A stretch of 64,000 nucleotides of DNA, from positions 27,094,001 through 27,158,000 of the forward strand of contig OZ281496.1 of assembly GCA_965637545.1 (NCBI GenBank). Direction: 5' to 3'. A program made the translations under genes and the position numbers. This document shows positions 4,771-55,917 of this stretch, one piece after another. The stretch comes from Phallusia mammillata. Lineage: Eukaryota. Position 1 is the first letter of the stretch. Every line of letters begins with the position of its first letter. Below the pieces are notes generated by a model. The model had not been told where the DNA came from and did no database searches. It saw only the letters and a list, made by a program, of their open reading frames with translations.

Positions 4771-4983
4771 AGAAAAAAGAAGAAGGCAAGTTTGTCTCTC
4801 GTGTCTCTCAAAAGCATATGCCACAATTGGGCTGACGGCTACTTCTTTCACAAAGTGGTGAAAACGTAAAAAAACTGCTTGAAATACGCCCCTCGTTTAT
4901 TTTCTAAGTTACAATTACCCCATGACAAACAGTGTTGACGCCCCGCGTTCAGGCAAAAACAAAAAAACAACCACTTTAGGGCG

Positions 4984-10354
<5,371 letters not shown>

Positions 10355-24447: not shown

Positions 24448-24626
24448 CAGTAGTGGGATTCAATTTTGTTTGAGCCGGTTCTATCACAAAAGTAATATTT
24501 TTCAGCCGGTTCTGTTACAAAAAGTCCGTTGACAGTAACCAGTAATGCTAACCGGTTCGCTGATCTCATTAAATTTTGCGAGACGGTTCTATAGAACCGG
24601 TGCGAACCGGCTAAAGCCCGCCACTG
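24448..24626. mobile_element. hAT-type MITE
   Basis: cagtagtggg...cccgccactg termini with a perfect 8-bp TSD gtcctttc. Same family as the elements at 2576 and 55788. Confidence 0.9.
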
Positions 24627-25081
24627 GTCCTTTCCATTTCTGTACATGTGGTCAGCATCAAGACTATAAATGACCTGGTGCACAGGTTCTCTTGTTTTTT
24701 TCAATATGTTCCAGACTAGTTTTGGTGACTTAATTTTTTTGTCATCTTCTTCGATTTATCAAAGTGCTTTCGCGATGTTGCTTAATAATGGAGGTCCTAA
24801 AATTAGGTGTTTGCAAGTCAATTTGTTGTTTTCTGTGATCGTTTAGCTGTCAAAGTTCATTTTTTTGCAGCTACTGTTTAGTATACTAGTTTTATTTCAA
24901 AATGCATCAACACAAACCACAACATCTAAGAACGTTATTTTGTTGTTTACGCTTTTGCAGCATTTAATAAAATCAATCACAAAAAAACTTCGTTAGATTT
25001 CACACAACTTCAAGTAAACCTATTGCAGTTGTAAGGGCACACATAGTTTAAACATTGAGTTTTATTCGGTGCCAAAAGTTT

Positions 25082-28076: not shown

Positions 28077-28545
28077 CTCTCAAGTTTTCTGTTTTAATGC
28101 GTAAATTTTAAAAGCGTTGAAGCTACCGAAGTCGGTCCTGTCGAAATATCCCTTAATAACTTGACCTGTGGTTGTGACACAGATATTTTCAACTTTGTAC
28201 GTGACTTGCGCAGTCTGTTACTTAAAACCATGTTCACTCTCATGCCCTAAAGGTATCGATTGGATTGTTATGCAACTGGCTGTTCGATGACATAGTGCTT
28301 GTTTGACTAGAAGAAACGCCCATGTTTATTGTCAGGGTCGTTTAAAGATGCAATAAAACAAGGTGTTTTATTACCAGTAAAAACAAGTTAATCTTTAAAA
28401 GGTCGAAAATGCTAATTGAATACGTGACTAACTTAGGTGTTTTTTGTTTTTTGATCAACAGTCTGTGCAGATATTAGATCAAACCAAGTTGACATATGAT
28501 CTGTCTACCTCAGTAATAAACTCAATGAAGTTGTCATGTTTAATT

Positions 28546-33420: not shown

Positions 33421-36400
33421 CTAACGATCGTGGTCATGTAAAACATGGACACACGGGTCCTGACAGAAGTGGCCAGCTAAATCTTTCAAGGTTTCCTCCA
33501 CCGAAATCGGTGAACCTTCGACAAACCTAAATATATGTTTCTTATCCCCTGTAATGTCAAATAGTTGCTGTTCGTCAAACACATATCCGTCGCTCCCGAA
33601 CGCATACACGTACATCTGTAAAAACATTAAGATACATGGTTCACCAAACAGATTTCATCAAAATTGAACATGAACAATTTATGCTGTGTAACATTTTTAC
33701 ATAAGGCAACTGCACGTTAATACGAAGTATTATGACGAGTTTGTTATGATGTTTCAAAAGCATCCACGTTTTTCCTTTCATGTTATAACCATGGCCAATG
33801 CTTACTCGGCTATTTAGGAACACATTTCCATCATGTGCAATTTATTTACCAAAACCTTTTGAAAGTATGTTGTTTGACTCTGTCCGAATAAGGAACTGAC
33901 TATGTCAATATAAAGCGAACATTTTGATCTGTCCATCCAAAAAGGCATTATGTGGTGCGCACTACGCAGCGATAGAAAAAGTCGCCAGGTGGTACGCGCT
34001 TAGTTTGAGAACCACTGTTCAATATCAACAAGTTAACGGACTTGGTAAAACGTACAAGGTATCCTAAGCTACGAGCGTGGGCTGCTGGGGTTCGTACGTC
34101 GTCGTCTGAATTGCTGTCAGTGATTACGGTTATTTCTTTTGGCACTCGTTCGTCTCTCATTCCGACCTCCGTTCTTAACATGTTGTCTACCGCAAACTGG
34201 ATAGCAGCGCCTGTGTTGGTTGGCGAATCTGTGGGATAAGGTGAATAATTAACAATCTGAAACCTCAAACACCGCGTTATTACATGTCAGTCACTGCTCT
34301 AGAGAGTTTAAGTGTATAGCAACATTTAATTCCTGTAAGTGTATGTGGATTAAGCCAAAAATAGTTTTTCAGCAAAATTAAACTCTTAATTTGCAAATTC
34401 ACATGCTTTACATTGTAATTATGTGAACGCGGCCAAAAAGTATCAAAACATATGTTGCATACACATCTAACTCTTCCAGACATATCTTTTGGTGGAAAAT
34501 TCAATCAAAGACATGGTTCGCAGCAAACATGTAGAGAAGTTAAAACTAAAATCATAGTTTCGTTTTCTTTTCGCACACCACCCTAATCATCAAATTTTAG
34601 ATTGTCTTTGCTTCTCTGCCGAAGGTCGACCTGATCAGAATTATCAGCTAATCAAGCTTGATTTGCACTCGCTGGATGGAAAAACTTTACACACTGCATG
34701 TTTATCAACTATTTACTTTACTGTGTTTGTTTTTGGCACTCATTTTTACATCCGTTTACAGAGACTGATGATGCCACTTAGGCGAAATATGCATTCCTTT
34801 ACATTACATGGAGCGACTGATTCTGTTTTAACCAAGGGTTTCATTGTCTATTGGTTTTACTGTTTTATAGTTAAAAAGGGCAAACTGTGATTATCCGTTT
34901 GAGGCCATGCTGTTGGTGGTTTTGTTCTATTACTGCCGTTTTGATCTATTGTTAGTTTGGACTTTTATGACTAACATATAAAAGAGATAAGTTTGACTTA
35001 CCATCTGCCACAGGTAGAAATTTTTCTCCGAAAAGTTTGCCAAACAAAGTTGCGTTGCCGTTGTAATCATCAAAATTAACGACGGACTGAAGGTTGGGCT
35101 GAGCGCCGTACGTAAACCCTGCGCCCATGGTAGTATCTTCGCTTATAGTAATGCTGAAATTGAAAACCAAAAACACATGCTTTTTGGTCCATACGATGTA
35201 GGTGTCAAAAATGTTGTGGGCTTAATACATTTTATTATTTCAACCCTGGCCTTACAAAATCTGTAAAAAGTGACGCCCAAGGCTCCAGGCAAAGTAGGAG
35301 GGAATACTGTTAAACACACACACGTTTTGGTGAATTATCTTTTGCATACACTTGCAGTTTACCGTGTTTATTTTAAAAAACAATTTTTGATAAAATGACA
35401 ATCTTTGTATCCATGTTTTTGTCTGCTTGTTTGTTTGTAAGAAACAACTTAAAACTGAGTTTGAATCGAACCAAACCACTTACTTTGAGACATCTACAAA
35501 TGTTCGGTAGACAGATTCCATGTTTCTGGCTTTGAAATGATACAAGCCCACGGAGTCGAATAACATGAAAGGTGGGCAGGGACCTAAAAATTAAACATCT
35601 AACTAAGATTCAATGGAAGCTACGTGTATATCACTGAAAGCAGGTTACTGAGTTAGAATCCATACTGTTTCATATAAATCGTTCTTATCGACCATTTCGT
35701 TCTTATCACAGACGCAACATGATTTGTATTTGCTCACGTGCACAGCAAGGTGCTTTACTATTCCAGTTGCCGTCGGCTTTACACACAATCTCATCCTTTC
35801 CTGCTGGCCACAACTCGTAACTTGGGTCAGTACATTGATATCTGCAAACTCCGTTTTCGCAATTGACTCTTCCATGCGGCAAGCTGGTCGACGGTGATGG
35901 GCAATTGTTGTAAACTCTTTCTGCTCAGGAAGAGTAACGTTTAGTCATATTGTACTTACTATAGCATCAGTAAATCATACAGCATTGTAATTCAATCTAT
36001 CTGATACCTACTGCAACCTTGTACGCCACAACCCAAAACTAATTTATCTTAATTATTGTCAACCAGAAACAAGCGTTTAAATACACAGCATAGAAGGAAA
36101 AACTTTTTTTGCCAACTATCCTGTTCTAACGTATTGCATTATGTGACCCAGTTCAACACGTACTCAATTTTAAAAAAAACTCTCGCAAGTGGTCTGCAAT
36201 GTTTAGAACGAGAGGTCCTGGTTTATTTCATTACGTTTTCTGGCAGTTTGTTTTGTGACCGAACTAATTTCTTTTCTAAGTTAGGGAAACGCATCTCTAA
36301 AGGAGATAAGTTATCAACGTAATACCAACCCGGTGCTGATCTAGGGACAGGTCTTGACTTGGGTAAAGGTCTGGGGTTAGGAACAGGTCTTGGTCTCGGC

Positions 36401-37157
36401 ACAGGCCCATTTAACAGACAAGTGTTCGATCCAGCATTACACAGATTTCCTTGGCAGCAACACGTACAAACTGAATTGGCCTGATCTGTATTACACTGTG
36501 TTGAAGTTCCAGAAGGTGCTCTGTTCTGTGTTTTTCAAAACAAAAACGTCGTGTTCTTTAGAGAGAGTATATATAGCAATATACCGTATTTTTGTCAATT
36601 ATTTTTGTCAAGGCTTTAAACACTTTTAATGACGAAAATGGCAAAATAAATTGTCCCATGGTGACAGATTATACAAATTTTTATTATTCAAAACATTTTG
36701 GAAATGAACAGAATACCTGGTTCTGGTTGTTTCTGCAAGCATGCGAGTCCTTGCAACCTTTGCTAACTTGTAGTCTTCTGTTGTGTCTTCTTATCACTGT
36801 TTCACAGGATTTCTGCAAAAACAATAAAGTTTTTTGAAACTATGACATAAAAGTTTAAGGACTTAAACATTGATGTTAAATATGCGTTATACTGAATAAG
36901 ACGATACTTTAAATTAAAGTTACGATATTTGAGGTTTAAAAATTGATTAAATATCTTTTTAAGAAACTCGAAATACAGGTCTAATAGGATTTCACAACAA
37001 ACATTACTTGGTTTGGTTGGCAAGTCTGTTCCCCTCTGCGATCACACGCCCTTGTACTAGCTGCTGACTGACATGTTATACATCGTAGTCCAGTTGCATA
37101 AGAAAAAGCACAAACAAAAACACAGCAGCAAATCAAAAACCTTATGAAGCAATGCAT
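33421..37157 (-). CDS. Array unit 6: secreted Ly6 - Pro/Arg linker - CCP - vWA protein, intact
   Basis: MHCFIRFLICCCVFVCAFSYATG-LRCITC; SCETVIRRHNRRLQVSKGCKDSHAC; CTCCCQGNLCN...PVPRPRPVPNPRPLPKSRPVPRSAP; CPSPSTSLPHG; LFDSVGLYHFK; HFCQDPCVHVLHDHDR*. Confidence 0.88.
36334..36405 (-). repeat. 4 x 18-bp coding minisatellite (Pro/Arg-rich linker of unit 6)
   Basis: Coding strand: CCTGTGCCGAGACCAAGA / CCTGTTCCTAACCCCAGA / CCTTTACCCAAGTCAAGA / CCTGTCCCTAGATCAGCA. Confidence 0.85.
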
Positions 37158-38007
37158 TCTTAGTATGATACCTTCCACACAGAACAGTTCTGTAAAATAA
37201 CACTCGTAACTTATTTGATTTGGTCGTGTACCCAACTGACCGTCTTATCTTGCGACGTATGTCTGATATTGTCGATTGATAACCCTGACATCATAACAAC
37301 ATTTTGACCTGTTGCGAACCCTAAGGAGCAGCTATTTCAAACATAAGCTAAAACAGTACATTTGCAGTAACGTTGTCAATATTCCTGTGTGGTTGGTCGC
37401 ACATTTAAAACTGTGTTTGGCGTCCGGCTATTCTAAACTAATAAAATTTTAAATACTGCTTTGACCAATAGCATTTATAACAGTGCATATGTTTATCCTG
37501 AAATTATATTTTTTTTGTCAACATCTTGTTTCAATTAACGATTAAAGTCAGAAACAGTGCAACACATTTGAAACGGGACTTTTAGTCAGACCTATGTAAT
37601 ATAATATTCTTTTCGCCAATTTGACACCAGACACCCTTAGGGCTTTTAGTTTTAAGACATGCTCGCAAGGATCTTTGCCAAAATGTGAGTTTATGTCGTT
37701 CACTCAATATATCTGTGTGTATGATAGATTACTCTACTTTTGACTCACACAAACTGCTTATTCAAATAGATTTGAAAACAGCTCACGACACAATTGTCTT
37801 CTCTACAATATTACAGTCTATCTGCACAACAATATAAACAGCTCTTGCAAACAAGATTAATAATTGTGCATGTGCTTTTATTTCTTTTCTTGTAATCAAC
37901 TGAGCCACAAAATACTCCATTATACAAATTTTTTGGTACACAATATTCATACAAAAATTTTTGGTACAAAATTTCGTGCCGCTGATGTGCTACCAGACTG
38001 AAGCATT

Positions 38008-41000
38008 TTACTGGTTATGATCGTGCAAAACGTGAACACATGGGTCGTCACAGAAGTGAGAATTTAAGTCTTTCCACCAGTCTTCTGGAAAAGCATCAAA
38101 ATCGCTTCCAAATTTGAAGATGTGATCTTTATTTCCAGTGATGTCAAGCAATTGTTGGTCATCAAGCACAACTCCTTCCCTTTCAAATGCGTAGACGTAT
38201 ATCTGTGCAAGTAAATGTTTTAGTTTATTAGAAAGAAAATACCGTATTTCGCTGGAACTGTAAGTCTATGTAGAGTTGTAATGCATTTATTGTTGTTTTT
38301 TAACACGAAACAGGGCACCAACATTTTCTTTTCTCTTTTTTGACATTTAAGAGGGTAATACCTTACATAGTAGACGCTCAGTGTGTTGACGATCCTAAGT
38401 GTTAGTATAACAATATTTAAACGCGCATCTTTTCAATGATAAATTGACAAAATAATATAGCTCACAATGTATCCAAGATCCCGAGCGTTTTGTCCGGCAG
38501 TTTTGACGTCATCATCCGAGTTGCTGTCGATGACAATGGAAATAGCTTTTGGTACCCGGGAGTCTCTTGCACCATTTTCGGATTTAAACATGTTATCCAC
38601 GGCGTATTGGATCGCTGCTCCAGTGTTAACAGGTGTTCCTGTGATAGGCAGGAATTCTTATGCATATGGTGGTTAAAAGATTGTATTCTTTAACGCTGAT
38701 GTTATGAACCCATTTGAACTCACAGTTTTTTCCTGGTAGCTTATTTCTATGAATATTTTTTATCCGACACCGTTTGTGAAACCTCACGGTCTTTAACGCT
38801 ATGACCGTTTAGAAGAGACTTTAAACGGTTCTACACCCCAAATACTTGGCTTACACGTGTATTGACTTGGCACTTATATGAGTGATATAACATTACTTCG
38901 ATTGAGTAGCAAAAAAACACACACCCAGTAATACTTTTCTCTAGTTGTTCAATAGTCAAACTTTAAATTTACATGAGTTGAGACAAAAATTTATGAGACA
39001 ATTTTCTCTATTGGTGTTTAAACATGAGGTGAGGTCATTACACCGATACACCTACCTTCAATCGAGGGCCGTAGTCTTTGTCCGAAAAGTGTGTTCATTA
39101 TAGTCTCATTGTATTGATATTCGTTGAAATTAGTGATTGATGACAAATGAACAGAAGAATCATATGATAAGCCCGCGGCCATTGTGGAATCGGCACCAAT
39201 GACAATGTATCTGAAAACACGAAACGAATGGTTATGATTTTATTGTTTATTACTTTTTTGATAATTTGACAGAGAATTGTTGCGTATTGTTTAATGTAAG
39301 TAAAAGATAAACAACAGGAGTAATTTAAAAGCAAACTTACTGTGACAGTTCTCCTAGAACACGAAACATATTTTCTACGTTGTCCGGTTTAAAGTGATAC
39401 AATGTCACGAAGTCATACAAGTAGTAAGGTGGGCAAGGTCCTAAAACATAAAAAAACATCGTTGAATGGGTTTACTCTAATTTCTTTTCTTTTTCGGGCA
39501 CGAAGTACTTACGTGCACAGCAAGGTGTGTCAAATTGCCAGTTTCCGTCAGCTCCACACACATTCTGATCTCGTCCTACTGGCCACAGGCCATAAGTTTC
39601 ATCAGTGCATTGATATTTGCAAACTCCGTTTTCGCAGTTGATGTTTCCATGTGGAAAACTCTTTGGTGGCGCTGGGCAGTTGTCATGTCCGACTAAAAAA
39701 CAAGTCATTTACATATTCTGTATGTATACAGAATCGAATAATCTCAATTGACAGCTTAAACTTGAATTTGGTTTGGTTATGTAGTAGGTTGGCGATTTTA
39801 ATAGACACTTTTTGCCCACAATCTTAGTATGACTGGCCAGTTGTAGGCTTTATACGGAATTTTTGCCCTCAACGAATTATTTTTGTCCCGACCATGCTTA
39901 AATGGTTTGCAGACACTAGTTTTGCGAAAAAATTATATTTTACTTGCAGAAACTTTGCATCAGTTGTTGTTTAGCCCAGTTTATATTAGTTTATATTACG
40001 GGTCGAGTGCGCGTTAAGCTTTCGCTAAACACAAAAGAGGCCAGATTCAAACCCAAAAACCTACGCCGTATTTGCTTTGTGAATTGATTTGTTGCGTTTT
40101 AGTCATACATTCCGGAAACTTGACGTGGACTGTCTGCCAAATTTGTTTCTTCTTAACATTAGTGCCCCATTTTCGAGAGTAAAATTTTAGCCCGCTTTCA
40201 CTTTTAACCCAAATGGTTTATTTGTAAGTTGCTTGTCATGATCTGTTGTATAAACGAACCTAGTGATGTGGGGACGGTTACAGCGGAAGAACAGTTTTCA
40301 AGTCCAGCGTTGCAAGAATCTCCATCACAGCAACAAGTACAAAATGAGTTGACTTGGTCTCCATTGCATTGAGTAGACTTGCCTGAAGGTCTGTTGTTCT
40401 GCAAAAAAACAAATATTTTTGTAACGACAAACAGAAAATGTATTCCTAACGTATGTTTAACACCTACGAACCGCATAACCGCAAAAAAAGTTATTTCACT
40501 ATAGTATAAGGCAAGCCTATACATCATACGAAATTGTTACATTACATAGATGACACTGTGCATCCTGTTAGAACCTCTTTAGCAGAAGAAATGCCAAAAT
40601 AGCATTTCCATGCTAATAACGTACGAATGCAGGGATGACAGGGCGATGATGGTTGATAATGCGTAATTACACATAGCTGCTTCCCCAAAAGTACCCGGGA
40701 AAATGAATTGCTTTGAGCTAAACTGTCGGATGTGTGTCATTAATTTGTTAGACAGCATTCGTTTGCTTATTAAATCCCCTGTTTAGTTTAAGTTGTGTTG
40801 AAAAATTCAAGACACTTGCGGGCTTATCTTATAACCTACGAACACTTTATTTTTCTACTTTTTGTTAACATATGTCTTTAAGTCTTTTTCAAGGATCTCT
40901 CAAATACAACTGGGTGCGTTAATTACTTTGCAATAACAGGTTCTGGTATCACCAGTATCTTCATATATTTACCTGCAGTTGGTTGTTTTTGCAAGCTTGC

Positions 41001-41500
41001 TGATTTTTGCAGCCTTTGCTTACATGCATTTGGTTGTTGTATCGTCTTATCACCGTCTCACATGAGTTCTGAAAGGTTAAGTAAGTAACAAAATTCGCAT
41101 TTCAAAGGCTAAGAACGTGTTAATTAGGCCAAAACAACTCAAATGTAAGCCAAGATAAAGCTTGTTTCCCACTTTTTTTTTTAATAAAAACAGCGATAAT
41201 TTCTGCTTGAAAATTGACATTACTTATTATATATTCCCTTCCATTGACGCATAGAAATTTTAAGCAGTCATGACAAAAACAAACACAACTGCTGTTTCGC
41301 GCTTGGAACCAAAACCATCTTGAATTCCTTCTGTAAGTGTTGGTGTACTTAAAATCACTTACTTGATTGTCCAAACATTGTTGTTCTCCTTCCAAATCAC
41401 ATTGTTCAACGCTTGAGGCACCTTTGCATGTAATGCATTTTAGGGCTGAAACGCTTGCAATGGCACAAGCAAAAAGTATAGTAACAACCAATAACTTCAT
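38008..41500 (-). CDS. Array unit 7: secreted Ly6 - CCP - vWA protein, intact
   Basis: MKLLVVTILFACAIASVSA-LKCITC; SCETVIRRYNNQMHVSKGCKNQQAC; CTCCCDGDSCN; CPAPPKSFPHG; LYDFVTLYHFK; NTGAAIQYAVDNMF; HFCDDPCVHVLHDHNQ* (stop 38008). Confidence 0.88.
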
Positions 41501-41955
41501 GGTTTTGTCATAGAGCTATCACCGATACAGCAGAGATGGATTTGTTTATAAACCCCATTTTGTGACCTTTCTTTGCAAAACCTGCCTCTTGGGCACGATA
41601 AACATTAAGATTAACACGTGTGTCATAAACAACACCTGTAAAACCCGCTTCGAAACACTTAAGGCTTGGCGTATGTCATAAACATAAACGTGGACTTTAA
41701 AGCGCTTATTGTTGTTGTTATTGTTATGGTACATTTGCTACCCCTACGTTTCAGTTATAAAGCGCTGCATAACAGCCGTATTATAAAGCTGAACTGCTGA
41801 AAAACATACCTCGTCAAAACATTCTGATTTTATTTAGCGCAGGCGGGGTGCAATAATAAAACACATCACACTGACACGTTTTTTTACAGTAGAATGAAAA
41901 TAGTGGACAATAGCAACGTTTGATTTAACTGTAAGAGCCATGTGTTTGAAAATGC

Positions 41956-42849
41956 TCAGTTTTTGGGGCCTTCGCTCCCACCGAACGGCGAAGTAACAAT
42001 TGTTTTCCATGTTTCGTAGGTCAGCAAAACGGCCATGAGGTTCGCCGTAACATCAAGTCCGTAAATTGACAGTGGAATCTTTCTGCTTGATTGGGGAAGG
42101 TACTTGTTCACAATAGCCGCAGCAGCGTCCGTCAAAACGCAGATGAGAGTTGTAATTGTTGTGCGTTTTACGATAGACAGGCTAGCTCTGCTTCCATGTC
42201 TTTGCTTAGCGCAATGGAACGGATATAAGAGCAGGAAAAGCATTAACGCTTGACCGATGGCATTAACCGATGTAGCGACAAGGGCAGGCCAAGCGATGTA
42301 GTCGCCCTTGTAACGGCAGCCGCACGCGGTGTGTTCATATGTGTTAAGCACGTTGAAGATTATCCCAGAAAGATGTTGACCCACGACCATCATTATAATA
42401 CTGCTATAACTCAATACTTTAATCAATGTATTTTTAAGGTGCTGAAGTAGCGGGCTCTGATACAACGTCGCTTGTTTGGTCCATAGAAAAAAGTACACCA
42501 GAGAGTTTGAAGTTACCAGTAGTTCTATCGAAATTTTTACCACAACGTTGCACATGGTGGTTTCGCCAGGTAAGAAACCTACGTTGACGACCACTAGAAT
42601 ACTGATAAGAAACGCTAGGACCGATACTGCTGCTACAGAGGCCAGTCGGTAAAGCACATAGCCGCCGTTACTCTTCGAAAACTTTTGGTGTTTTAAGCCG
42701 TAGAACAGGAAAGAAATGAATACCCACGTTGAAAGCATAATACACATGCTGCTTATTACTATCGCACCGATCCATTTTGGCTTTTCGTAGCGTTCCATAT
42801 GTCGTATTTTTAAAGGACTTCTAGCCATCGTGTTGTTTGCAGAGTTCAT
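41956..42849 (-). CDS. Intronless orphan 7TM (GPCR-like) protein A, 297 aa
   Basis: True ATG at 42849 (MNSANNT; the ORF-track start is a GTG). Seven hydrophobic segments, N-terminal N-glycosylation sequon, Cys at the top of TM3 and in ECL2. TM3 end is VYFFLWTKQATLY (no DRY). Confidence 0.8.
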   Translation of the reverse strand: MNSANNTMARSPLKIRHMERYEKPKWIGAIVISSMCIMLSTWVFISFLFYGLKHQKFSKSNGGYVLYRLASVAAVSVLAFLISILVVVNVGFLPGETTMCNVVVKISIELLVTSNSLVYFFLWTKQATLYQSPLLQHLKNTLIKVLSYSSIIMMVVGQHLSGIIFNVLNTYEHTACGCRYKGDYIAWPALVATSVNAIGQALMLFLLLYPFHCAKQRHGSRASLSIVKRTTITTLICVLTDAAAAIVNKYLPQSSRKIPLSIYGLDVTANLMAVLLTYETWKTIVTSPFGGSEGPKN

Positions 42850-44247
42850 TGTTCTTTTTAAACAATACACAACGGTTAATTTCTGTTACAGCCCCAGAGA
42901 AATTGAAACAATAAATACAATTTAAACCTAAAGTAAGTTAAAACTTGTCTGATTTAAATTTGAAAGAGAAATGTTTCTGCAACTTTATTATCAAATTGAT
43001 AAAGTTACGACGCTTTCTCTCCTAATTTGGGAGCAACAAACTTGCTGGTGTTACTGATCATGTATTATATTTCTTGTGATAAGAACTTACGAAAATTCTA
43101 AATCTTCCAGTGACTTGTGCTTCCTTAATGGAAAATACTGTTCTAAGTTGTGTTACAAATAGGATCATATGCACTGCTAAAAAACAACTCTTTTAAATGT
43201 GTTGTATCGTTAAAGAACGACATTTTAGAGAATTATATCATCAAATTGTCAATTTCCATACACTTTGGATTCTTATTCCTTCTTGCTTGACAAATATATA
43301 TATATTATCTGCAAGCACTATGAGACTTTATAGAAGCAATCCTTTGTACAAGGCATTACACTGCGTACTGCTTATGCCATAACAACCCTAAGCCATAAAT
43401 ACACTTGGCTTTTGCTGTAATTTGTTACAAATCAGCGGACATTTTGACTTCCCAGGACGCGTTCTGGAAAATACCTTTTCATCACACACCGTGTTTTTAT
43501 GACACACGCTAGGCCATGCGAACACAGTGATGAAATTGTTTAGAAGTGCTGACTCTGATCATGAAGCACTTGGTACTTGGAAATAACGGCTTAGACTTTG
43601 AAACACCAACTGCTTTGCGCGAAACTGTCGGAACTTGATCATTTAACTAGCAAGCAATAACCGCAGTACAAAAACCCCAACTATAGTCATTACTCTTATA
43701 CGCATCCTAAAGCAGTAGTAGGAAATTTTGTTTATCCCCGTTTAGACTTCGTTTATGAAGAGTTTTTCTCACGCCTTTGAGTTGTTTTTCTTTCATACGC
43801 GCCCTAAATTCTTGCATTTTAGACACGTATGCAAATATTTCTTTAAAATATCAAACTGTATGTTATTAGCCGTTTTGTCAAATTGCTTGTTAAGTATTTT
43901 AAATGATTTTTCTAGCTCTTTGTTTTTGAACGCGATTACAGATTTGAAATTTTAGCGTTTTGAAATTTACTGGGTATAAACACCATGCCAAAGCCAATGA
44001 CCTTCTATCAGCGTTTTCTCCTTCGTTTTCTCGATAATTCTGAAAACAAAGTTGGCTATTTGTGAGCAAAAACGCTGTCCCACAAACAAAATTTGAATAG
44101 ATTATAGGCAGCCAAGCATAGCCGCTCTTGGGTAGTCTCTCAAACGTTTCAGTGCTTTTTGTAGAGCCATGACCAATGTGCAAGTTTAATGTTGACCAAT
44201 TTTTTTACACAATATTGTATTTGGTGCGACGATGAAAGAAACGAGTT

Positions 44248-47151
44248 TTAAAGTTCATGGTCGTGCAAAGCATGGGCACATGGATCTTGGCAGAAATGTT
44301 CTTGTAGGTCCTTCCACCATGTGTCCGGAAAACTGTCAAAATTCTTTCCAAACTTGAATATATGTTTCGGGTCGCCGGTGATTTCCAAAAATCGATCATC
44401 ATCAAAGACTACTCCTTCCCGCTCAAACGCGTACACATATATCTGTGTGTATGAAAGAGTTAGTTTTGAATACCTTGTTTGCATGATTGCTATGGGTAGA
44501 GCATGTGGCACGCTTGCCAAGGTTGGCATTTGAGGTGATTTTTCATGGCATGTTTATATTAAAGTGCTAATTCAAAGTGTTACATTGCTTGTTATCATTG
44601 GTCAATCATTTAATCTTAAAATCTAGCTGACACGCACATATATCTGCTTTCTGTTCACCACTGATATTAGTTGGCACAAACCATAAAAATGTTGCCACGC
44701 GAAGTCATTACAACATAAAAATAACAAGTAAATTGACAAGCGTCGCGTAAAAGGTTGCCGACCCCTGCATGGTGTAAAATTTTGCATGGTGAAGAAAAGT
44801 GTGTGCGCTTGGAGTTTAACAACTCATGATTTTAGCCGCAGCTTTTGCTACCCCGTTATATGACTGGGAACAGCAATATTACTTACAACGCGAAAACGAC
44901 CGTTTTGGTTTTGATAAAGTGAGTTTGCTGAATAGTTGTTTATAATTTATCGCAAATGGGAAATCAAACATTGGTTACAAGAGTTTAATGAAACTATTAT
45001 GTGAACTTACGATGTAACCAAGGTTGCGAGCGTTTTCCGAAGCAGTTTGGACATCATCGTCTGGGTTGCTGTCAGTAAAGATTGAAATTGTTTTCGGCAC
45101 TCGATGGTTTCTCATTCCGAGTTCGGGTCTGAACATATTGTCTATTGCGTACTGGATCGCAGCGCCCGTGTTGACAAGTGTTCCTGAAACAAAACACGCA
45201 AGTCACTTAAAAACGGTTTGCTATTGCTATTCTAGTCTTTATTATGTGCTTGTTTATTGCTTTGCGTACTGCAGCAGCTGTGTGTTATGTTGCAACATTT
45301 TTAGCATGGCTAAAGCTGCTGCCAAACCAAGCAAACACAGTGGTTAACGACACACCAGCTATTATCTCAGAAAATCGAAAGAATATTGTTCTATTTCTTA
45401 AACCCACATCAGGACTGTCTACAAAATTTGTATTGTCCAAGTTTTCTGTATGTGGCGAAATGAACCATTTTGTTCATATATCAGGAAAGCAAATCAGAAA
45501 AGAGTGACATACATCAGCAAAGGGTGACAATTATACTTACAAAAGCGCCGAAGAGTCAACCCTAAAACAACATGACTTACCATCCTGAAAGGTTTGCAAC
45601 CGTTCTCCAAACAGTATGCCGTAGGAATTTATATTATACCCATCCTTAAAGTGAATCACTGATGACTCAACAGGCTCATAGCCGAAAGACAATCCTGCCA
45701 AAATGGTGGATTCTGGACCAACATGGACCGATCTGTATAACACGTTAAACAACAATTAAAGGTTGCAAAAAGTTTGAGCTAAGTGCGTAACGCATTTTAT
45801 TCATTTTTTTAAAACAAAGCATTCTGTTGCCAGAATGTGGCAAAACTTACCCCATAATTTCAGTTAAAGTCCGAATAGCGTTTTCAATGCTACCAGGTTT
45901 GAAGTGATACAAACTGAGAGAATCGTATAGGACGTATGGTGGACAAGGACCTGTAAAGCACACATGGTGTATTTTCCAAGTGAATATTCATTACTAAAAA
46001 TTAACACTTTGCTTACGTGCGCAGCAAGGTGTGTCATATTGCCAGTGGCCGTCAGCTCCACACACATTCTGATCTCTTCCTGCTGGCCATAACTCGTAAA
46101 TTGGTGAAGTGCATTGATATCTGCAAACTCCATTTTCGCAGTAGATTTTTCCGTGTGGAAAACTCTGTGGTGGTGCTGGGCAGTTGTTATGTCCGACTAA
46201 GAAACAAAGTAATTGTTGGTAACGAACGCTGCTCTACTCAGACCAGCGGTTTCCCAAACCTTTACTAGATGGAGTTTCATTGTTAATATAGAAGCCGTTT
46301 GAATTTTACAAATTAAATTATATGGATGGTGCTTGTGGGAAATAAGGGGAAAGCACAGTAAAACAAATTAACCTTGTAGAGATGTGGGGACAGATATAGG
46401 AAAAATGCAGTTGTCAAGTCCAGTGTTGCACGAATCCCCTTCACAGACACAAGTACAGAACGAGTTGACTTCATCTCCATTGCATTTAGTAGATTTGCCT
46501 GAAGGCCTGTCGTTCTGCAACAAACCAATTACATTATTGAAAAGAACAATAGGACGGAGCTATGCTGGAGTGTGTTTCTTTCGACGTATAAAAGTAACGC
46601 ACTAGATTGTAGCAGCATTACAATAACCACTTACAAACAATTTGCTTCACATTTTGTTGACACATGTCTTCAAGTCTATTTCAATGATTTCCTAAGTACA
46701 ATCTTTTTTACTTTGCATCAATACGTCCATTTTCCATCTAATAATTCATTCTAGCACAAATATCTTTAGATATTTACCGGCATTGGGTAGTTTCTGTGAG
46801 GTTTCGGATTTTTGCAGCCTTTGCTTATACGCAACTGGTTATTGTATCTTCGTATCACTGTTTCACATAAGTTCTGCGAAATCAAAGGGCCGTAAACAAA
46901 TATTGCCACTGAAAAACGGTAGTTAACATTTACATAAATTTTATGTGCTGTTTAAATTATCAAAATAGTTTATGATGATTTACATTACGTATTGCACAAT
47001 TGAAATCACTTACTTGATTTTCCATACATCGTTGTTTTCCTTCTAAGTCACATGTCTCAAAGCTCATAGCATTTTTGCATGTGATGCATTTCAGAGCTGT
47101 AACGCTTGCAATAGCGTAAGCAACAAATATACTTACAATCCAGAACTTCAT
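44248..47151 (-). CDS. Array unit 8: secreted Ly6 - CCP - vWA protein, intact, lacks one Ly6 disulfide
   Basis: MKFWIVSIFVAYAIASVTA-LKCITC; LCETVIRRYNNQLRISKGCKNPKPHRNY; CTCVCEGDSCN; CPAPPQSFPHG; LYDSLSLYHFK; HFCQDPCAHALHDHEL*. Confidence 0.87.
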
Positions 47152-48220
47152 AGTAGATTTTTTACGCAGTCTTTTGATTCTGTCAACTCAACTGTCTAGG
47201 ATGTGTATATATATTTCTGAGTTGTTTTCACAAGACCTGCCTCTTGGGCACAGCGCACAAATATTTACACGTTTGTAATCAACGACAGTGGTAAACAGCT
47301 TCTAAACCATTGTTTGTTGCGGTGTGTATCCTAAACATAAAACCTGGACTTACTCAAATCTCTTACTTCGCCCTGGTTCAGTCGAAAATACGTCTGTCAA
47401 GTATTTGCATGTATTTTGTAATTTATTAAATTTCGAACGCACCCTGTTCTAATTAAGATGTGCTACACCATACATGTTCAATTCATACATAGTTAACACA
47501 TTTCCTACATACAGTTTGTTACAACCAGGTTGCAGTTGTAATCGTTATAACCACGTTTGACTGCGTTAAAATTTTTGTTGTCGTTTAAATTACGATATTT
47601 TCTCTCCACGAAATTTATCCAAATTTTTGCTGCAAGTATTAAAAACAATTTGTTTATTTACCCTACTGTCATCAATGTGCGAAATAACGTTCAAACTTCA
47701 CATATCATACGCTAGTAGAACAGTGGTGATGTTACACTACGCAGATGAAAAAAAGTTTACAAGGTGAAAATCTGACAGAAAGTTACAACGCATATTAAAT
47801 TTGTAGCTATTGGGGGGACTATCCAAACAACCGGCATATTTCCACAAATTAATAATGACTTAAACCCGCACTGCTTTTTTACCTTATGAACGTGCATGTA
47901 TATGTCAATCCGTTCTTTTGCCCTTTCGACCAGGTCTATCGACCCTACACAGTGTCACGATAAACACAAAACACTATCCTTTTAAACGGTTGCCTCAACG
48001 TTTTCTGCTCGTTCAACAGTATGGAAAATGGTTCATTGCGTAAAAAGCAACATTGTATTGTATGTTACATGGTTCCATTTTTTTTATCTTACAGATTTAT
48101 TTTAGTGTTTGCGAAACGAATCAAGTACTCAAGCGAAATGACAAGCAAGGTCCTTTCGTTGTAGATTTTCAAATTAAACACCATCTATTTTTCTTTGGTA
48201 AGCATGTTTCAACTCAGGAC

Positions 48221-49150
48221 CTATGCTTGTGCATGAGTCAATCGTCTGAGACCAATTGAATTTCTTTGATCACTCCTCTTATTAAAAGGCGAAATAAGTA
48301 TCGACCGCCATGTCTCATATGTTAGCAGAACAGCAGTGAGATTGGCCGTAGCACTTAGTCCAAATATTGATAATGGAATATGTCCTCCTATGTCTTGAAA
48401 GATACCGTTCAAAACACAAGCGACAGCGTCTGTTACAACGCAAATCAATGTTGCAACTGTTGTGCGTTTTACCATGCCCATACTGGTTTCAGTTTCACGT
48501 CTTTGCGTCGAGCAATATAACGGATACATAAGAAGAAAAAGCATCAATCCTTGTCCTATGGTGTAAAGGGATGATCCAAAAAGGACAGGCCATATATGGT
48601 AATGGTCCACAGAATTACAACCGAATTCAGTCACTGCAAATTTGTTAACCAAATTAAAAGCTATGGCGGAAGCGTGTGTCCCGAAAACCACAAGAACAAT
48701 GCTGATGTAACCTACAATTTTAATCCATCTATGCTGAAGGTGTTCAAGCGTCGGAATTTGATATACAGTTGCTTGCCTTTTCCATAGGAACAGATAAACC
48801 AGAGAGTTTGATGTGGTCAATATTTCCACCGAAAGCTTTGTGTGGATATTGCAAAACTCACTTTCGCTTGTGGTAAACTCTACAAGAAACATAAAGGGAA
48901 TGCAAAGGACAAAAGCGAGGACTGATGCTCCAGCCGCAGTTGCCATTGAGTACAAAACAAATCCATCGTTTCTTCGTGAGAATTTACGGTGTTTAAACCC
49001 ATAGCAAAGCGCAGATGCAAATACCCACATTGAAAGTGGAATACACACACTACTTATCACAACTGCTGCAATCCATGGCGCTTGTTGATGGCGAATGTCT
49101 GAATGAAATTTAATCATACCTTCGTGCGTTGTGTTGTTTACTATCTTCAT
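48221..49150 (-). CDS. Intronless orphan 7TM (GPCR-like) protein B, 309 aa, paralog of protein A
   Basis: ATG at 49150. Shares motifs with protein A: WI.A.VISS.C, TSNSLVY.FLW..QAT.Y, IGQ.LMLFLL.YP, VKRTT..TLICV.TDA, IPLSI.GL..TANL.AVLLTYETW. Confidence 0.83.
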   Translation of the reverse strand: MKIVNNTTHEGMIKFHSDIRHQQAPWIAAVVISSVCIPLSMWVFASALCYGFKHRKFSRRNDGFVLYSMATAAGASVLAFVLCIPFMFLVEFTTSESEFCNIHTKLSVEILTTSNSLVYLFLWKRQATVYQIPTLEHLQHRWIKIVGYISIVLVVFGTHASAIAFNLVNKFAVTEFGCNSVDHYHIWPVLFGSSLYTIGQGLMLFLLMYPLYCSTQRRETETSMGMVKRTTVATLICVVTDAVACVLNGIFQDIGGHIPLSIFGLSATANLTAVLLTYETWRSILISPFNKRSDQRNSIGLRRLTHAQA

Positions 49151-50241
49151 TGTGCTAGTATTCTAATTTGTCCTGTTATAATCTTTCACGTTAATAGCGT
49201 TGTCTGTACTTTGCATGCAAAAAGGCAAAACGTCTATCAAAATACAAAATAAATAACTTTTCAGGTTTAATGACTTTAATGACTCGTAACGAAACAATTC
49301 CGCAAGTCTTTTTGTAATGTAACTCTGCCTGGCTGTTTAGAGTAAGTTTTGGGATATTTACAAAAATGTGCTTATTTTCCACCAGACAACTTATTTAATG
49401 CAGCATATCTGTTGTTGCTTAGTACTGTATCATTTCTTCACAAAAACATTGTCTCACTTGGTTTACTTCTTGTACAAAACTTTCAAATAGCAAAGTAGGC
49501 TACACGCCTTTTACTTTAAAAGGACTTTCCGTCTAAGCCATTCACGTTGGACTGATATATACTACGTGCTGTTCATTTAAAAAAAAATATGGTTTGCCCT
49601 TTACCTTCCGCCTCATTTCTGCCTGCTATTGTCAATCAAACAGACATTGATTTAAGCTTCCTTGCGATCCATGCTCCGTAATCTGCGCTTTTGCTCTTTT
49701 GCTTGGGCTTAAGGGTTTTACCTAAGTGACAGAATCAAATGCAATCGTTTTGACACGATTTCCATCTTGCTGATAAATAGTGCCTACAGGACAAGGCCAC
49801 CTAACCATCCTGAAGTTCCGCGCAACAGACAATTTAAACTACAAATATACTGTGTATGCCATCTTATAACAAATAATTTTTCATTACAGGAACTGACAGG
49901 ATATACTCGCGTTCAACTAATTTAAACCAAATCTTTGCCCCATATTGTCGTTTTTGTAAAATCCCAATGACTTCCCGTCGTTTCTTTGACTGTTCTTATA
50001 AAATATCCGTATGCTGTGAGTTTAGCTATTCTTTTGACACTTAATAGCATGTGTGTTGATATAGTCGCACAACCATAGAAAACGTGTACTCCACTTTTAA
50101 CACCAAACTTACATTTTAAAAATTAAACAAGTTTGCGACGCAAATATTGCAAAGTTGAAATTCAACCACAAATAAAACAGCGCCTTTTCTGAAAAAAGTT
50201 AGCCCTGCTGCCGGCTGTTTAGTTTTCATTTTTATCAAGAT

Positions 50242-53200
50242 TTAGAGGAGATTGTCATCGTGTAAAACATGAACGCAAGGATCAGAGCAAAAATGATCCA
50301 CCATGTCTTGCATCCAGGGTGCCGTAAAGTCCTCCGTGAATTCACCAATCTTAAAGATGTGTTTTGGATCGCCAGTGATGTCCAACAGCTGCTGATCATC
50401 ATACACAACTCCTTCCCGTACATATGCATACACGTAGACCTTAATGAAATGTTAGTGTTAAAATAAGGTAGGTTTATTTCGCTTGGAGAAAAACGACATA
50501 GCGTCACAATTGTACTCAAAACTATCACCAAGCGAAAATATCTGCGTTACGTTGAAACAATATTGAGTGCAAAATAGTTAGGTTTGGTTTGTGTGCTTGG
50601 TTGGCCGACTGGTGTAAAAACGAAAGACGGCATACAGTAATTTTTATAAGTGTCCCCTTGTGTTAAAGGTTTTAGTAAATGAGATGCTTTGGGTTCATTT
50701 GTTGCGAAATTGGAGAATGGAGGATCAATATGGGCGCCTGCAGAAAATTTGACAAAAAAAGAAACAAAGAATCTAGGGCAAATTTATGAATCATGCATAC
50801 TTACGGGGAAGGATTACGATTTTAAGTAATTATTTACATGGTTATAAATTGTATACAGTAGTATTGCGTTGCATAAAACCTAAAAAACATTCTGCCTAGG
50901 AAAAAATTGCGACGTACCATGGTACGCATTCAGTCTGTCGAAAATGCAACAAAACGACAAACCTTTTGAAAACGACACCAGAAACGTTAATAAGACAGGC
51001 ACAGTTAAACTCGCTTGGTTAGTCATATACGGACTTTTTCTACACCACTTTTTAAAGCGTGATACTTTTACTTTCATCAGGTTTTGACAACATTGGTAAT
51101 TTGGAAGTACATTTAAATTTCAAGGGGGAATTGCTCCTTTATACTGTATCGACAATTGACAGTAACTTACTAAATATCCCAAACTTCTTGCGTTCTCAGC
51201 TGCAGTCTTGACGTCATCATCTGAATTGCTGTCAATCACAATAGAAATCGATTTCGGCACGCGGTTGTCTCTCATACCAAGCTCGGACTTAAGTATGTTG
51301 TCCACTGCGAACTGGATTGCAGCGCCTGTGTTGACTGGACCTGCGAAGAAATCAATCAGTCGTTTAAATATTTACTGGTGCATGTGTTACATTTTTATTT
51401 TGGCATCGTTGTTTGAAGTCATAAATACAATTCTATGTTACGTCGCTGTAGCGAATTATTGAAAAGACTTGGCCCCACAAGGCTTTGAAACAGACAGTTA
51501 GAGTTTGAATTGGATGTAAATTGGGGTTGTTTTGGGTGTGTTATATCTATATCTGAATAACATCCACGTTTAAGACCACAAAATTATATTTGGTTCCTTA
51601 AATGGGACTGAAAGGCACAGCACAGCTTACAACCTTGTCCAACGTTTAATGCGCTACAAAACAAGTAGGGAATCATTGCTTTATTTTGTGGAGTTAAGTT
51701 TTTTACCTTGATCGGCAGCTTGCAGACGTTTTCTTGCCAGTTGAGAATACAAAGTTCCGTTATATTCGTAGTCGTTGAAATTAATAACTGAAGCCACATG
51801 AGGTTCGGATCCGTACGACAAAGCCGCAGCCAGTGATGAATCTGGTCCGACGTGGATGGATCTAATTCAAAATCGTTGGTTTACGTTAAAACTTATACTC
51901 CTATACATATTTTGCAACAAAATATTTATTTATTTTTAATATATTTATTGCATGAGCGGCTTTCGAAGCTTACTTCATAAGTTCCGATAGAACGCTGAAC
52001 ATTTCCTCGAAAATTCCAGATTTAAGGTGGTAAAGACTAACATCATCGTAAAGAGCGTATGGTGGGCAAGGTCCTTCAAAAATAAATATATTGGTAATAT
52101 TTAATTGAAACGTCTATCGCCAGAACTGTCAGGCAATCGCGTACTAACTTACTATTTAATTGGTGCGCATATTTATTTATTTATTTTTGAGCAAAAAAAT
52201 CGAGCCAGTATATTTGTGTAGAACGTCAGATGTCATCGTCGACAATAGCACTTCGAAACGTAGTTATGTTCTACACAAATATACTGGTTCTGATTTTTTG
52301 CTCAGATTATTCAAAGCCGTGAACAGTGTACCTACTTTTTTTTGTTCGGTAAAAGCATTGTGCTGTTTGCGTGGTTATTTGACTTCTCAAAGCCATTTTT
52401 CGTGCATACTGTACAGTGTACACTAAGGCACAACCGCGATTGTGGCTATAAATGTTTCTATTTCTTTACACTAAAAACTATAAATGCGACGTACTTGCAC
52501 AACAAGGTGTATCGTATTGCCAGTTGCCGTCGGCTCCACACACGTTCTGATCTCTTCCTACAGGCCACAGCTCATAAGTTTCATCAGTGCATTGATATTT
52601 GCAAACTCCGTTTTCGCAGTTGATGTTTCCATGTGGAAATCTCGTGGGTGGTGCTTGGCAATTGTCATGTCCGACTGAAAAACAAAGAAATGTTGTTTGT
52701 GACTCATGTTATGCTGTAATCTGTCGGTAACGTATATATATCTTGATAGAAATGTTGCAATTTGCTGCCAAATACTGCGGATCCATACTACGGGAAGCAG
52801 TATTTTAATACTACACCAACCTATCGGTGAAGTGGGGACAGATACTGTAGAAGGGCAGTTGTCAATTTCAGCGTTGCAAGAATCTCCATCACAACAACAA
52901 GTACAAAACGAGTTGACTTGATCTACATTACATTGAGTAGATTTGCCTGAAGGTCTGTTGTTCTGTCACAAAACAATAACAAGTGTAAGAAAAATACTTA
53001 TTAACGTACATGAAGTGTTTTCTAAATCATTTACCTGCTGTTGGTTATTGTTGCAGGACATGGCTTGCTTGCAACCTTTGGTTACGTAAATCTTGTCCAT
53101 GTATCTTCTTACTACTGTTTCACATGCATTCTGTTAAAATACGGAACAGGTCAAACTGTTACAATGAAAAGCATAGAATAGCCCTTACATTGTTTCATGT

Positions 53201-53657
53201 CACTCCAGTTATCAAATAACCGCTTCATAAATTTTGCTAGTTAATAAAATATAGATTTTCTTTAAAGTACAAACAAACCTAACTACACTTGGAGCGCAAA
53301 CAAACCCAATTAAAGGGAAACCCTGGCACGAAGTTTGAGAAAGCTATAGTAAAACGGACACTAGTACAATTTACTGCAAATTAAATGTAAGGTTTGGGCA
53401 AAAACTTTACAAATAGTTGCGTGTTATAAAAGTCTGAAGTAGCTGTTTTAAACTGAATGCAGATAAAAAGCAAGATTTTATCATGCAAAGTTTATTATAT
53501 AACTTACCTGGTTAACTTGGCATTGTTGTTCGTCGTTTTGGTCGCATTCTTCAAAGCTGGACGCTCCATGGCAAGTAATGCATTTCAGCGGTGACACCGA
53601 GCCACCAAAACATAACAAAACAGCAAGAGAGAGCAACACAACAGCCAAGAACTTCAT
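50242..53657 (-). CDS. Array unit 9: secreted Ly6 - CCP - vWA protein, intact
   Basis: MKFLAVVLLSLAVLLCFGGSVSP-LKCITC; ACETVVRRYMDKIYVTKGCKQAMSC; CTCCCDGDSCN; CQAPPTRFPHG; LYDDVSLYHLK; NTGAAIQFAVDNIL; HFCSDPCVHVLHDDNLL*. Confidence 0.88.
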
Positions 53658-55787
53658 GGTATTTGCTGCAAGCTGTTTTAAAATGTAAGCACTTGACACT
53701 GCTGCCGTTCCTGTTTTATAGTGTTGCGTTGTTGGTATTTATTGTTAGGTGGTCATGGCCACGTCGTTAAAATGCTTGTAAAGTGTCCTGCAGTCGTAAT
53801 TGTTTAAATAGCCAGGTCATACAACACCGGATTAAAGTCGTCTTAAACCCTACAGGAACTTCACCTATGACACTTCTACAAAAACATGCTGGGCTGTTTA
53901 AAGGACATAAAAACGAAAAAATGTTTAAATCTTTGCTGATTTTTCCTTACATGTCGTCGTAGTAAATGCTTTTTAACCAAATGTTTCCAATACGTTTCGA
54001 GAATGGTATTTGACAAAAAAGGTACAAGAATATTGCATGTCACTTTTCAAATTACAACATTTACTTCAAACGTTTTTGCTAAATGCAAGCAACAAATGTG
54101 GGGGCGTGTGGAACTTAGGTTTTTATTTGCTCAGCTGTTGTAATGTATAAGTTTATGGCACTTCATCACCTAACATGCGCTGTACATGGCTTCAAATGTC
54201 ATTTAACACTTGTTATGCATCTACAATGCAACCTGCCCCTAGTTCCACTTTACAAGTATTGTAAAGAGTACCGGGAAACACTGACGACCTGATAATTGTC
54301 AGATAATTGATGCTTCTATTGCCGACGTGCTATCAATCTTACTCTGTATTGTTCCGTTTTGACATCACCTTAGCAATTGACACGTCGTGGTAATGTCAAA
54401 TTTTACAAGGTGGAAACAGTTGTAGTTTCTCTGTAATGCGCCTGAACCTCGCCATCGTGCAGTATGGGTAATCTGAGTTGGTATTTTTTTCTTCTTTTTG
54501 TACACTATGCGAAAACATTTTTGTGTCCCACTATATTTTGAAATTGCATTTAACTGAACAAACGACAAAAAACTCTATACCGAATAGAATATAATGATCT
54601 TAGGAATGAATTTTTGTTTGTAATATCCTTACGAATGACTTAATGTTCTATGAGTTACCGTATTCAAAAATACCACAGCATCAAAACCCGTGACTAACCG
54701 AACGCATGTGGATCATAGTAACCAAAACCTACACAATAACCTCACCGAACAAAAATATACAGGAATACTACGTGCGAAAACTCACTAGTCGAAAACAATA
54801 ATCTCAATTTTTTTATTACCAGAGCCGACTTTAAAACATCAAGGAAAAAAACGATGCGATAGAAAAACATCTTTGATATCAGTAACAACGATGGTTCAGA
54901 TATAACGAATTTTTAAATGTATTTTACATAAACGTTAGAATCCAGCTCCCAACATGAAAGGTTGAAATTGTCTTCTTTGAATGCTAATGTTACACTCCAA
55001 TTTATTTCTTGTCATGTTCGTGCAAGACGTGAACGCATGGGTTTTGGCAGTAGTGGCTTTGTAGATCTTCAAGCCATTTAGAAGGAAACTCGTCAAAGTC
55101 TTGATCGAAACACACTTGCCGGCTAGAGAATTATTTCAAAAACTTCACGAGTTGGTTGAATGTATCAAAAATTAAAGAAGTATGCCGATTTTGAATTTAT
55201 AATCATAACAATATTATTTGTACAAACAAGCATTTGCCTAACACTGCACCAGACACCAAGCGACGAAGTCCATTTTCAGTTCCGCTTTCTGTGTACTTTT
55301 GTTTCTATCTAGTTCCTATAATAATGAATGCCTTGCATTTGGCTGTGCTAGCCCATAAGTGCAAGAGGGGACACAGTAATAGAAAGAAAGTCAGTGTTTG
55401 TTTAACGCATCAAGCTCGAATGTTTGATCCATCGAACAATGTCTGTCGTATTTACGTATCTGATGTTGTTTCCGTAATCTCTGCTGTTTTACTGTTTTTG
55501 AGCTAACAGAATGGTGCACATGGTCCGTGTTTTTTTTACATGGTATGTGATTTAGGTTATAGGCAGCACAATTGTACTGTGTATAATTTAACCATAGGCT
55601 TATTAGGCTTTATGATATCACAATCCACTCAGATAGGCTATATGATATCAAATCCCTTATATAACATTTTCTATCGGCACTCAAAGTGCTAGCTACTATT
55701 GTTACTGTGTTGATAGAGATCAAGTCACAAAAGTTTTTCGAAAGAAATAACCTACACATTTTAAAGTTATCATTTGTCCGTTATAAC

Positions 55788-55917
55788 CAATGTGGGGATT
55801 CAATTTTTTTCTCAGCCGGTTCTATCACAAAATTCACTGTTTTCAACCGGTTCTGTTACAAAATGTCCATTGAGGGTAACCAGTAATCTATAATCTATGA
55901 ACCGACTCCCACTACTG
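55788..55917. mobile_element. hAT-type MITE (2576/24448 family)
   Basis: Perfect TSD gttataac. The internal gccggttctatcacaaaa...ccggttctgttacaaaa is shared with the 24448 element. Confidence 0.85.

Follow-up and report, generated by a model that had tools for sequence, protein, structure and literature searches.

We have analysed a 64,000-nucleotide stretch of a chromosome-scale contig of the tunicate Phallusia mammillata (C3:27094001-27158000, with 0 N bases; hereafter the window), in which two intronless genes encoding putative seven-transmembrane (7TM) receptors, 48k and 42k, are interleaved with three units (u9, u8 and u7) of a tandem gene family whose products are predicted to carry a signal peptide followed by Ly6-like, CCP and vWA domains. 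The arrangement is probably the product of passive co-duplication, in one old event, at the border of two independently expanding families, with neighbours that are not cognate pairs; we infer that the 7TM genes and the units lack functional coupling. The features on which the argument turns are the following.

50242-53657, minus strand: unit u9, ATG at 53657, from the tblastn exon map
48221-49150, minus strand: 7TM gene 48k (7TM-B of an earlier note), an intact, intronless open reading frame (ORF) of 309 aa
47198-47351, minus strand: promoter-proximal block upstream of u8, common only to u7 and u8, found by blastn and local alignment
44248-47151, minus strand: coding sequence of unit u8 in eight exons, from RNA contig joints
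43918-44247, minus strand: 3' untranslated region (UTR) of u8, of at least this extent, from an RNA contig over 43918-44442
41956-42870, minus strand: 7TM gene 42k (7TM-A), an intact ORF of 304 aa when read from a GTG
41537-41697, minus strand: promoter-proximal block upstream of u7, common only to u7 and u8 (local alignment score 49; 71% identity by blastn)
38008-41500, minus strand: unit u7, exons placed by homology (tblastn), with exon 1 at 41363-41500 under abundant RNA contigs

The five genes are transcribed in the order u9, 48k, u8, 42k and u7, all from the minus strand, and the ORFs and exon map agree in this with the earlier note, which was made from the sequence alone; the stop codons it listed for the units (38008, 44248 and 50242) and for the 7TM genes (41956 and 48221) are all correct. 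The note also described the two receptors as intact, intronless, diverged from each other and devoid of DRY and NPxxY motifs, and each of these points holds. The predicted proteins are 49% identical over 297 residues in an ungapped alignment (E 4e-106), and since both align end to end with a Phallusia protein record taken as cDNA-derived (P0001, 58% identical to 48k), their coding sequences are evidently without introns. The start of 42k is probably the ATG at 42849, a position that lines up with those of its paralogues and gives 297 aa. The gaps between 7TM genes and units are short (0.46-1.4 kb, all on one strand), and only 456 bp separate the 42k stop from the ATG of unit 7.

The evidence that a 7TM gene and a unit were once duplicated together lies in the collinear DNA homology of the two modules. 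The 7TM ORFs correspond over 41984-42775 and 48285-49076 (64% identity), and they are followed in the same order by the upstream block (41576-41697 to 47231-47351 by blastn), exon 1 (41349-41503 to 47000-47154), exon 2 with intron sequence (40857-41071 to 46649-46876) and the later exons. The upstream block, which the earlier note had recognized as conserved, is well beyond chance expectation, since the local alignment of 41537-41697 with 47198-47351 scores 49 and shuffled sequences score 11.5 +/- 1.5, with a maximum of 16. Among the eight units with a 5' end, upstream sequence is held in common only by u7 and u8 and by the recent pair u2 and u3, and similarity within intron 1 is confined to u7 and u8. 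No similarity was found between the intergenic stretches upstream of 48k and of 42k. Homologous points of the modules are offset by 5651-6545 bases, so that the spacing of roughly 6 kb given in the note is right but loose.

Synonymous divergence (dS) between 48k and 42k is 1.74, with a non-synonymous divergence (dN) of 0.39 and a ratio (omega) of 0.22. For u7 and u8 the corresponding values over all exons are dS 1.06 and dN 0.22, and these conceal a marked difference along the gene: dS is saturated in exons 5-8, 0.49 in exons 1-3 and 0.34 in exon 4. The 5' halves of u7 and u8, including the promoter block, were thus probably homogenized later by gene conversion. The ratio of dN to dS is about 0.2 for both 7TM genes and both units, and all four have therefore been kept under purifying selection, as the note had supposed for both halves of its module.

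The closest relatives of 48k and 42k are six tandem 7TM genes at C3:25,669,995-25,685,957 (53-59% identical), 1.4 Mb away, and with these they form a clade (100/99) to which two sequences on C5, a broken 7TM gene and a fragment resembling 48k, also belong. In the best 7TM tree 42k stands outside a group made up of 48k and the 25.67 Mb array (support 93/82 and 82/87), and a clade of 48k with 42k is not rejected (approximately unbiased (AU) test, p 0.14 and 0.085). Units u4, u7, u8 and u9 form a polytomy in the unit tree, where a clade of u7 with u8 is likewise not rejected (AU p 0.24-0.37). A single duplication agrees with the trees and is not proved by them. On the basis of the collinear order, the promoter block and intron-1 similarity restricted to u7 and u8, and the comparably old divergence of the 7TM genes and units, one old tandem duplication of a [7TM + unit] module is supported as the history to be reconstructed from these sequences. 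This is the part of the note's module that stands: 7TM gene and unit were apparently copied together. The event was a single one, however, for the window has no third 7TM gene, units u1-u6 follow each other with a period of 3.0-4.6 kb and no 7TM partner, and a search of the whole window found no 7TM gene or relic beside u1-u6 or upstream of u9.

A different history, in which 48k and 42k came out of a 7TM array and were inserted among the units one by one, through ectopic recombination or transposition, and the likeness of u7 to u8 reflects later gene conversion only, appears unlikely. It would account for the 55-59% identity of both 42k and 48k to the 25.67 Mb array, which exceeds the 49% between them, for a best tree in which they are not sisters, and for the much younger age of the 5' halves and promoter block of u7 and u8 (dS 0.49) relative to the 7TM pair (dS 1.7), as expected of a conversion tract; a locus on C5, described below, shows that pieces of the region do move. 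Yet it calls for two insertions of closely related genes at the same position relative to a unit and on the same strand, the 3' halves of u7 and u8 are as diverged as the 7TM pair, and the AU test (p 0.085-0.14) allows 48k and 42k to be sisters.

In the co-duplication that we favour, two fast-evolving families, one of intronless GPCR-like (G-protein-coupled receptor-like) 7TM genes and the other of secreted Ly6-CCP-vWA genes, are neighbours on C3, where both duplicate time and again, and the units would at first have been bordered by an ancestral 7TM gene. A segment of about 6 kb, comprising that 7TM gene and the unit just downstream of it, would then have been duplicated in tandem in one old event, to give the order 7TM(48k)-unit 8-7TM(42k)-unit 7, and the interleaving would be a structural by-product at the border of two birth-and-death arrays. 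Each copy may then have been kept as a working member of its own family, not as half of a cognate pair, and gene conversion would later have refreshed the promoter and 5' exons of u7 and u8. Ectopic recombination between paralogues, which tends to place copies beside their relatives, could explain the layouts at 25.67 Mb and on C5 with no selection for linkage.

The sister locus on C3 shows how the same two families are disposed elsewhere. The nearest outside relatives of the secreted family are about 19 units on the plus strand at C3:25,687,754-25,757,968, and this array begins about 0.9 kb past the last of the six 7TM genes; its strand is that of the 7TM genes, and its exons are ordered as in the window. 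Here the 7TM block and the unit block are separate and not interleaved, and therefore the families expanded independently; the 7TM genes, all six, arose by recent copying (dS about 0.3 among themselves). Non-coding similarity above the level of shuffled sequences was not found between the 7TM-unit junctions of the window and that at C3:25.686 Mb.

The C5 locus (L033, C5:5738001-5748000) holds, at 2401-4780 and 7255-8697, a copy of part of the window, with about 80% identity that extends into the non-coding DNA. The copied sequence consists of the 3' half of 48k, portions of the intergenic region between 48k and u8, and exons 7 and 8 of u8 together with adjoining intron and UTR; a deletion has removed exons 1-6, and the 7TM fragment has an in-frame stop and consists of two pieces in different frames. 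Adjoining it is an older member of the 7TM clade (66-68% nucleotide identity to both 48k and 42k), broken across three frames. We regard the copy, from its sequence, as a younger version of the [48k + unit 8] module that was not preserved, and it looks like a case of homology-guided ectopic copying between chromosomes.

Expression was followed with Logan RNA contigs from four runs of three studies (tissues coded), mapped on 41300-47299; such contigs are better evidence of presence than of absence. Spliced joints establish that the runs contain RNA, and contig depths are 670-4350 over the exons of u8, 40-590 over exon 1 of u7 and 7-45 for intronic contigs within u8. By contrast the interval 41500-43900, which comprises all of 42k and both its flanks, has zero contigs in 4/4 runs, and 42k is not co-expressed with its neighbouring units in the samples of these runs. 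An operon or read-through transcript u8-42k-u7 was considered and rejected, because no RNA contig lies over 41500-43900 and none extends past 43918 from u8.

These results bear directly on the proposal that the 7TM genes and units are co-regulated neighbours, sharing enhancers or a chromatin domain with no direct interaction of their proteins. The single strand and the short gaps (456 bp between 42k and unit 7) are what such sharing would predict, but the absence of any contig over 42k and its flanks in four runs where depths over u7 exon 1 and u8 reach hundreds to thousands, the lack of read-through from u8 past 43918, and the differences in RNA level that the units themselves show between runs make this the least probable of the explanations weighed here, and a very improbable one.

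Abundant contigs in three runs join u7 exon 1 (41363) to an exon 2 (46873) at least 90% like that of u8, which the exon 2 of u7 in the reference resembles at about 83%. Other haplotypes could carry a hybrid unit or a converted allele from which the joint derives, and possibly differ in the number of copies of the module.

In its wider membership the 7TM family is not linked to such units. At least 122 family matches were obtained when the P. mammillata genome was searched for it, most of them intronless and intact and some with stops, and they lie mostly in arrays of the family's own, at C3:8.49-8.68 Mb, C3:24.23-24.31 Mb, C3:26.77-26.79 Mb and C1:4.53-4.55 Mb, near none of which were exons of secreted units found. 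The best relatives in Ciona are 26-31% identical and lie next to genes for a Trypsin-CUB protein and a Death-domain protein and to a further 7TM paralogue. Exons like those of the units were found neither within 10 kb of the Ciona 7TM homologues nor in 51 tunicate loci with family members from JGI metagenomes (577 kb). Outside Phallusia the searches gave no relative with more than about 35% identity, and the Ciona and metagenome checks, among which there is no orthologue of the 48k/42k subclade, bear on the wider 7TM family only. A distant member (L020, C3:18,547,752-18,548,621; 27-30% identical) lies 24-31 kb from small secreted clusters at 18.52 and 18.58 Mb, a loose association on a contig where both families are heavily concentrated.

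The earlier note had gone further than co-duplication and suggested that each 7TM protein and its neighbouring Ly6-CCP-vWA protein are a cognate receptor-ligand or receptor-co-factor pair whose linkage is selected, as in ascidian recognition loci. Several observations lean that way and weigh against passive co-duplication. All four genes of the duplicated module are intact, with omega about 0.2. The subclade of eight to ten 7TM genes that includes 48k and 42k is found nowhere but beside the secreted family, whether in the window, on C5 or, with the orientation unchanged, at C3:25.686 Mb. Moreover, the best 7TM tree joins the 25.67 Mb array to 48k on a branch that arises once 42k has split off, and in the unit tree the window units form a group that excludes those at 25.69 Mb (100/100); taken at face value, both trees together mean that the families were juxtaposed twice. 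This is a hint from the best trees, and the 7TM node behind it is weak, and concerted evolution within arrays can make the window units look monophyletic when they are not; the unit tree is blurred in any case by gene conversion. With about 14 unit clusters (some 0.23 Mb in total) and about 20 7TM clusters on the 32 Mb of C3, we estimate roughly 0.2 chance adjacencies within 5 kb, so that one ancestral adjacency would be unremarkable and two independent ones mildly surprising (about 2%, as a rough figure). The absence of 42k RNA, for its part, rests on contigs from few samples.

On the other side, the pairing is not one-to-one, the ratio of 7TM genes to units being 2:9 in the window and 6:~19 at the sister locus, where the genes are not interleaved; no 42k RNA was found where u7 and u8 are abundant; the younger copy of the module on C5 has decayed; neither other members of the 7TM family nor those of other tunicates show the linkage; and ectopic recombination can seat copies beside their relatives with no selection. 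The tight linkage is real, then, and from the rest of the evidence neither linked pairs nor co-regulated neighbours gained support. Pairwise co-divergence, which the note proposed to seek by comparing trees, was not seen in trees that leave the relevant nodes unordered. Linkage as a passive result of segmental duplication, which the note itself set against its proposal, describes most of what we find, with the reservation that at two or three loci the subclade and the secreted family are neighbours. We consider cognate pairs improbable, and keep the idea alive only because of the hint of two juxtapositions. There is an equally slender chance that the subclade as a whole (48k, 42k, the six-gene array at 25.67 Mb and the C5 copies) consists of receptors or co-receptors of Ly6-CCP-vWA proteins and was brought or kept together with them in cis more than once. 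Passive co-duplication at a border of two expanding families remains our preferred account of the window.

The 7TM proteins themselves have the features of a receptor fold with few of the signatures of a known class. The AlphaFold model of 48k (pLDDT 82.7, pTM 0.80) has seven transmembrane (TM) helices, at residues 24-53, 64-89, 94-129, 141-168, 187-216, 221-250 and 257-276, and a beta-hairpin in extracellular loop 2 (ECL2). All members of the family alignment have a cysteine at the top of TM3 (C100) and nearly all have G177-C178 in ECL2, and the pair C100/C178 fits the usual GPCR disulfide. Both the fold and these cysteines are shared with class A GPCRs, as is a basic residue about 25 positions past the TM3 cysteine, the site of R3.50. 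The Phallusia proteins differ from that class in their motifs: TM3 ends in W-x-[KR]-Q in place of DRY and TM7 has N...ETW in place of NPxxY (by regular expression and alignment), neither 48k nor 42k contains [DE]R[YFH] at the end of TM3 or NPxxY, and CWxP is likewise absent. They differ also in lacking a credible match to 7tm_1. This Pfam family was matched by 0/22 paralogues and by one of 57 wider relatives (E 3.5e-4), and no Pfam family at all was credible for 48k, 42k, the 22 paralogues or the 57 wider relatives.

Comparisons of structure gave a similar answer. Class A and class C GPCRs head the Foldseek matches in the PDB (E about 3e-4, TM 0.42-0.57), a search of the ESM Atlas returned a chordate cluster at TM 0.80 and then 7tm_1 and 7tm_3 clusters, and in the wide VIA structure search Ste2, microbial rhodopsins and class A, C and T receptors were tied at Z 14-16.5. 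Structure searches thus tie classes A, C, D and T with microbial rhodopsins, and the modelled fold appears to be a generic GPCR-like 7TM bundle, with a class that is not assignable from such searches. A search of PDB sequences with the family profile found nothing credible, and an exact-sequence look-up of 48k and 42k in public assemblies returned no record, a result that is uninformative.

A profile search of 1.84 billion representatives gave 1047 hits at an E-value of 0.001 or below, and among these all the named ones come from Phallusia, Ciona or Clavelina, the remainder being from environmental contigs. By these matches the two 7TM genes are new members of a large, tunicate-only orphan family, apparently one that has already been briefly noticed. 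The ORF of one member of the array 1.4 Mb away (L002) equals P0001 at 319/320 residues, and another locus (L009) matches the Phallusia protein record P0002; if these records are cDNA-derived, as we have taken them to be, the 48k/42k subclade is transcribed somewhere. The 7TM proteins are most likely surface receptors of a chemoreceptor-like kind, to judge from their fold, the dynamics of the family and one paper on Ciona, cited below.

In vertebrates the OR, TAS2R and V1R genes form arrays of intronless genes for proteins of about 300 aa with short N-termini, arranged in tandem with pseudogenes and subject to lineage-specific expansion. The Phallusia 7TM family is like them in all these respects, but there is no detectable sequence homology, and TAS2R14 (Z 14.5) is one of many tied structural matches. 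Tunicates are without the vertebrate smell and taste receptor families, and the orphan 7TM family is the main candidate for their replacement; clues to its ligands are therefore valuable. Should the 7TM subclade prove to be linked in cis to its ligands, this would provide the first ligand class for the orphan family.

The published description to which the family corresponds is that of the Ciona KH.C3.516 group, a set of 7TM proteins with no hits outside tunicates, many paralogues and a tandem arrangement, for which a chemosensory role was proposed (Johnson, Razy-Krajka and Stolfi 2020, EvoDevo 11:15, PMC7397655). The likeness of the Phallusia family to this group is by description (7TM, tunicate-only, many paralogues in tandem), and the setting inside an array of secreted genes is a feature of 48k and 42k that is absent from that account.

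Linked pairs of recognition genes are known in ascidians from s-Themis and v-Themis of Ciona and from fuhc and fester of Botryllus. The window resembles these loci in that a gene for a membrane protein and one for a secreted protein are tightly linked on one strand, and differs from them both in the protein families and in a pairing that is not one-to-one; no sign emerged here of recognition specific to alleles, of expression in gametes or ampullae, or of polymorphisms that segregate together. A genuine cis-linked ligand-receptor system here would be a new model of the evolution of recognition loci. However, the evidence favours two neighbouring and rapidly duplicating families that were copied together once, and therefore gene order alone should not be taken as pairing. 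Of use are an exact map and a handful of genes (42k, 48k, u7-u9 and the 25.67 Mb locus) on which pairing can be tested cheaply.

The structure of the secreted units is best established for u8, whose exons are at 47014-47151, 46778-46873, 46373-46514, 46015-46196, 45851-45948, 45580-45732, 45011-45182 and 44248-44442. Its seven GT-AG introns were seen as RNA contig joints in 3-4 runs. Unit exons were searched singly, and were joined only as alignment columns for distances and trees. Exon 7 of u8 matches Pfam VWA (PF00092) at an E-value of 7.8e-9, above the family cut-off, and exon 4 matches Sushi (PF00084) weakly (E 0.28, model positions 1-56/56), with the four-cysteine CCP pattern present. Exons 1-3 encode a signal peptide and, in u2, u4, u7 and u9, the Ly6/uPAR-type cysteine pattern LKCxxC...CCxGDxCN, of which u8 is without two cysteines; single exons 1-3 gave no Ly6/uPAR hit in Pfam. 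The CCP exon (46015-46196 and its homologues in all units) differs far less from unit to unit (dS 0.3-0.9; nucleotide identity as high as 95%) than do the saturated vWA exons, which suggests exon-limited gene conversion or strong constraint. One unit at the sister locus (o2) has no match to the CCP exon.

The remaining units of the window, and a relic of a tenth, were all placed by the tblastn exon map.

13252-15431, minus strand: unit u1
16287-19301, minus strand: unit u2
20757-23946, minus strand: unit u3
25088-28097, minus strand: unit u4
29555-32232, minus strand: unit u5, without exons 1-3
33424-37145, minus strand: unit u6
55008-55109, minus strand: relic last exon of a tenth unit, upstream of u9

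This relic, and another short piece of a last unit exon at 37653-37697, between u6 and u7, are the remains of lost units. The segment at 19995-20203 is 88% identical to 14285-14493 and includes a piece like exon 5; it is a stray partial copy of u1 between u2 and u3. Scans of the region with Rfam and for tandem repeats found nothing relevant. Several dispersed repeats of 74-85% identity (11066-11474 with 5956-6331 of the C5 locus, 24432-24546 with 55767-55887, and 2575-2731 with 24448-24627, the last inverted) are probably transposon fragments.

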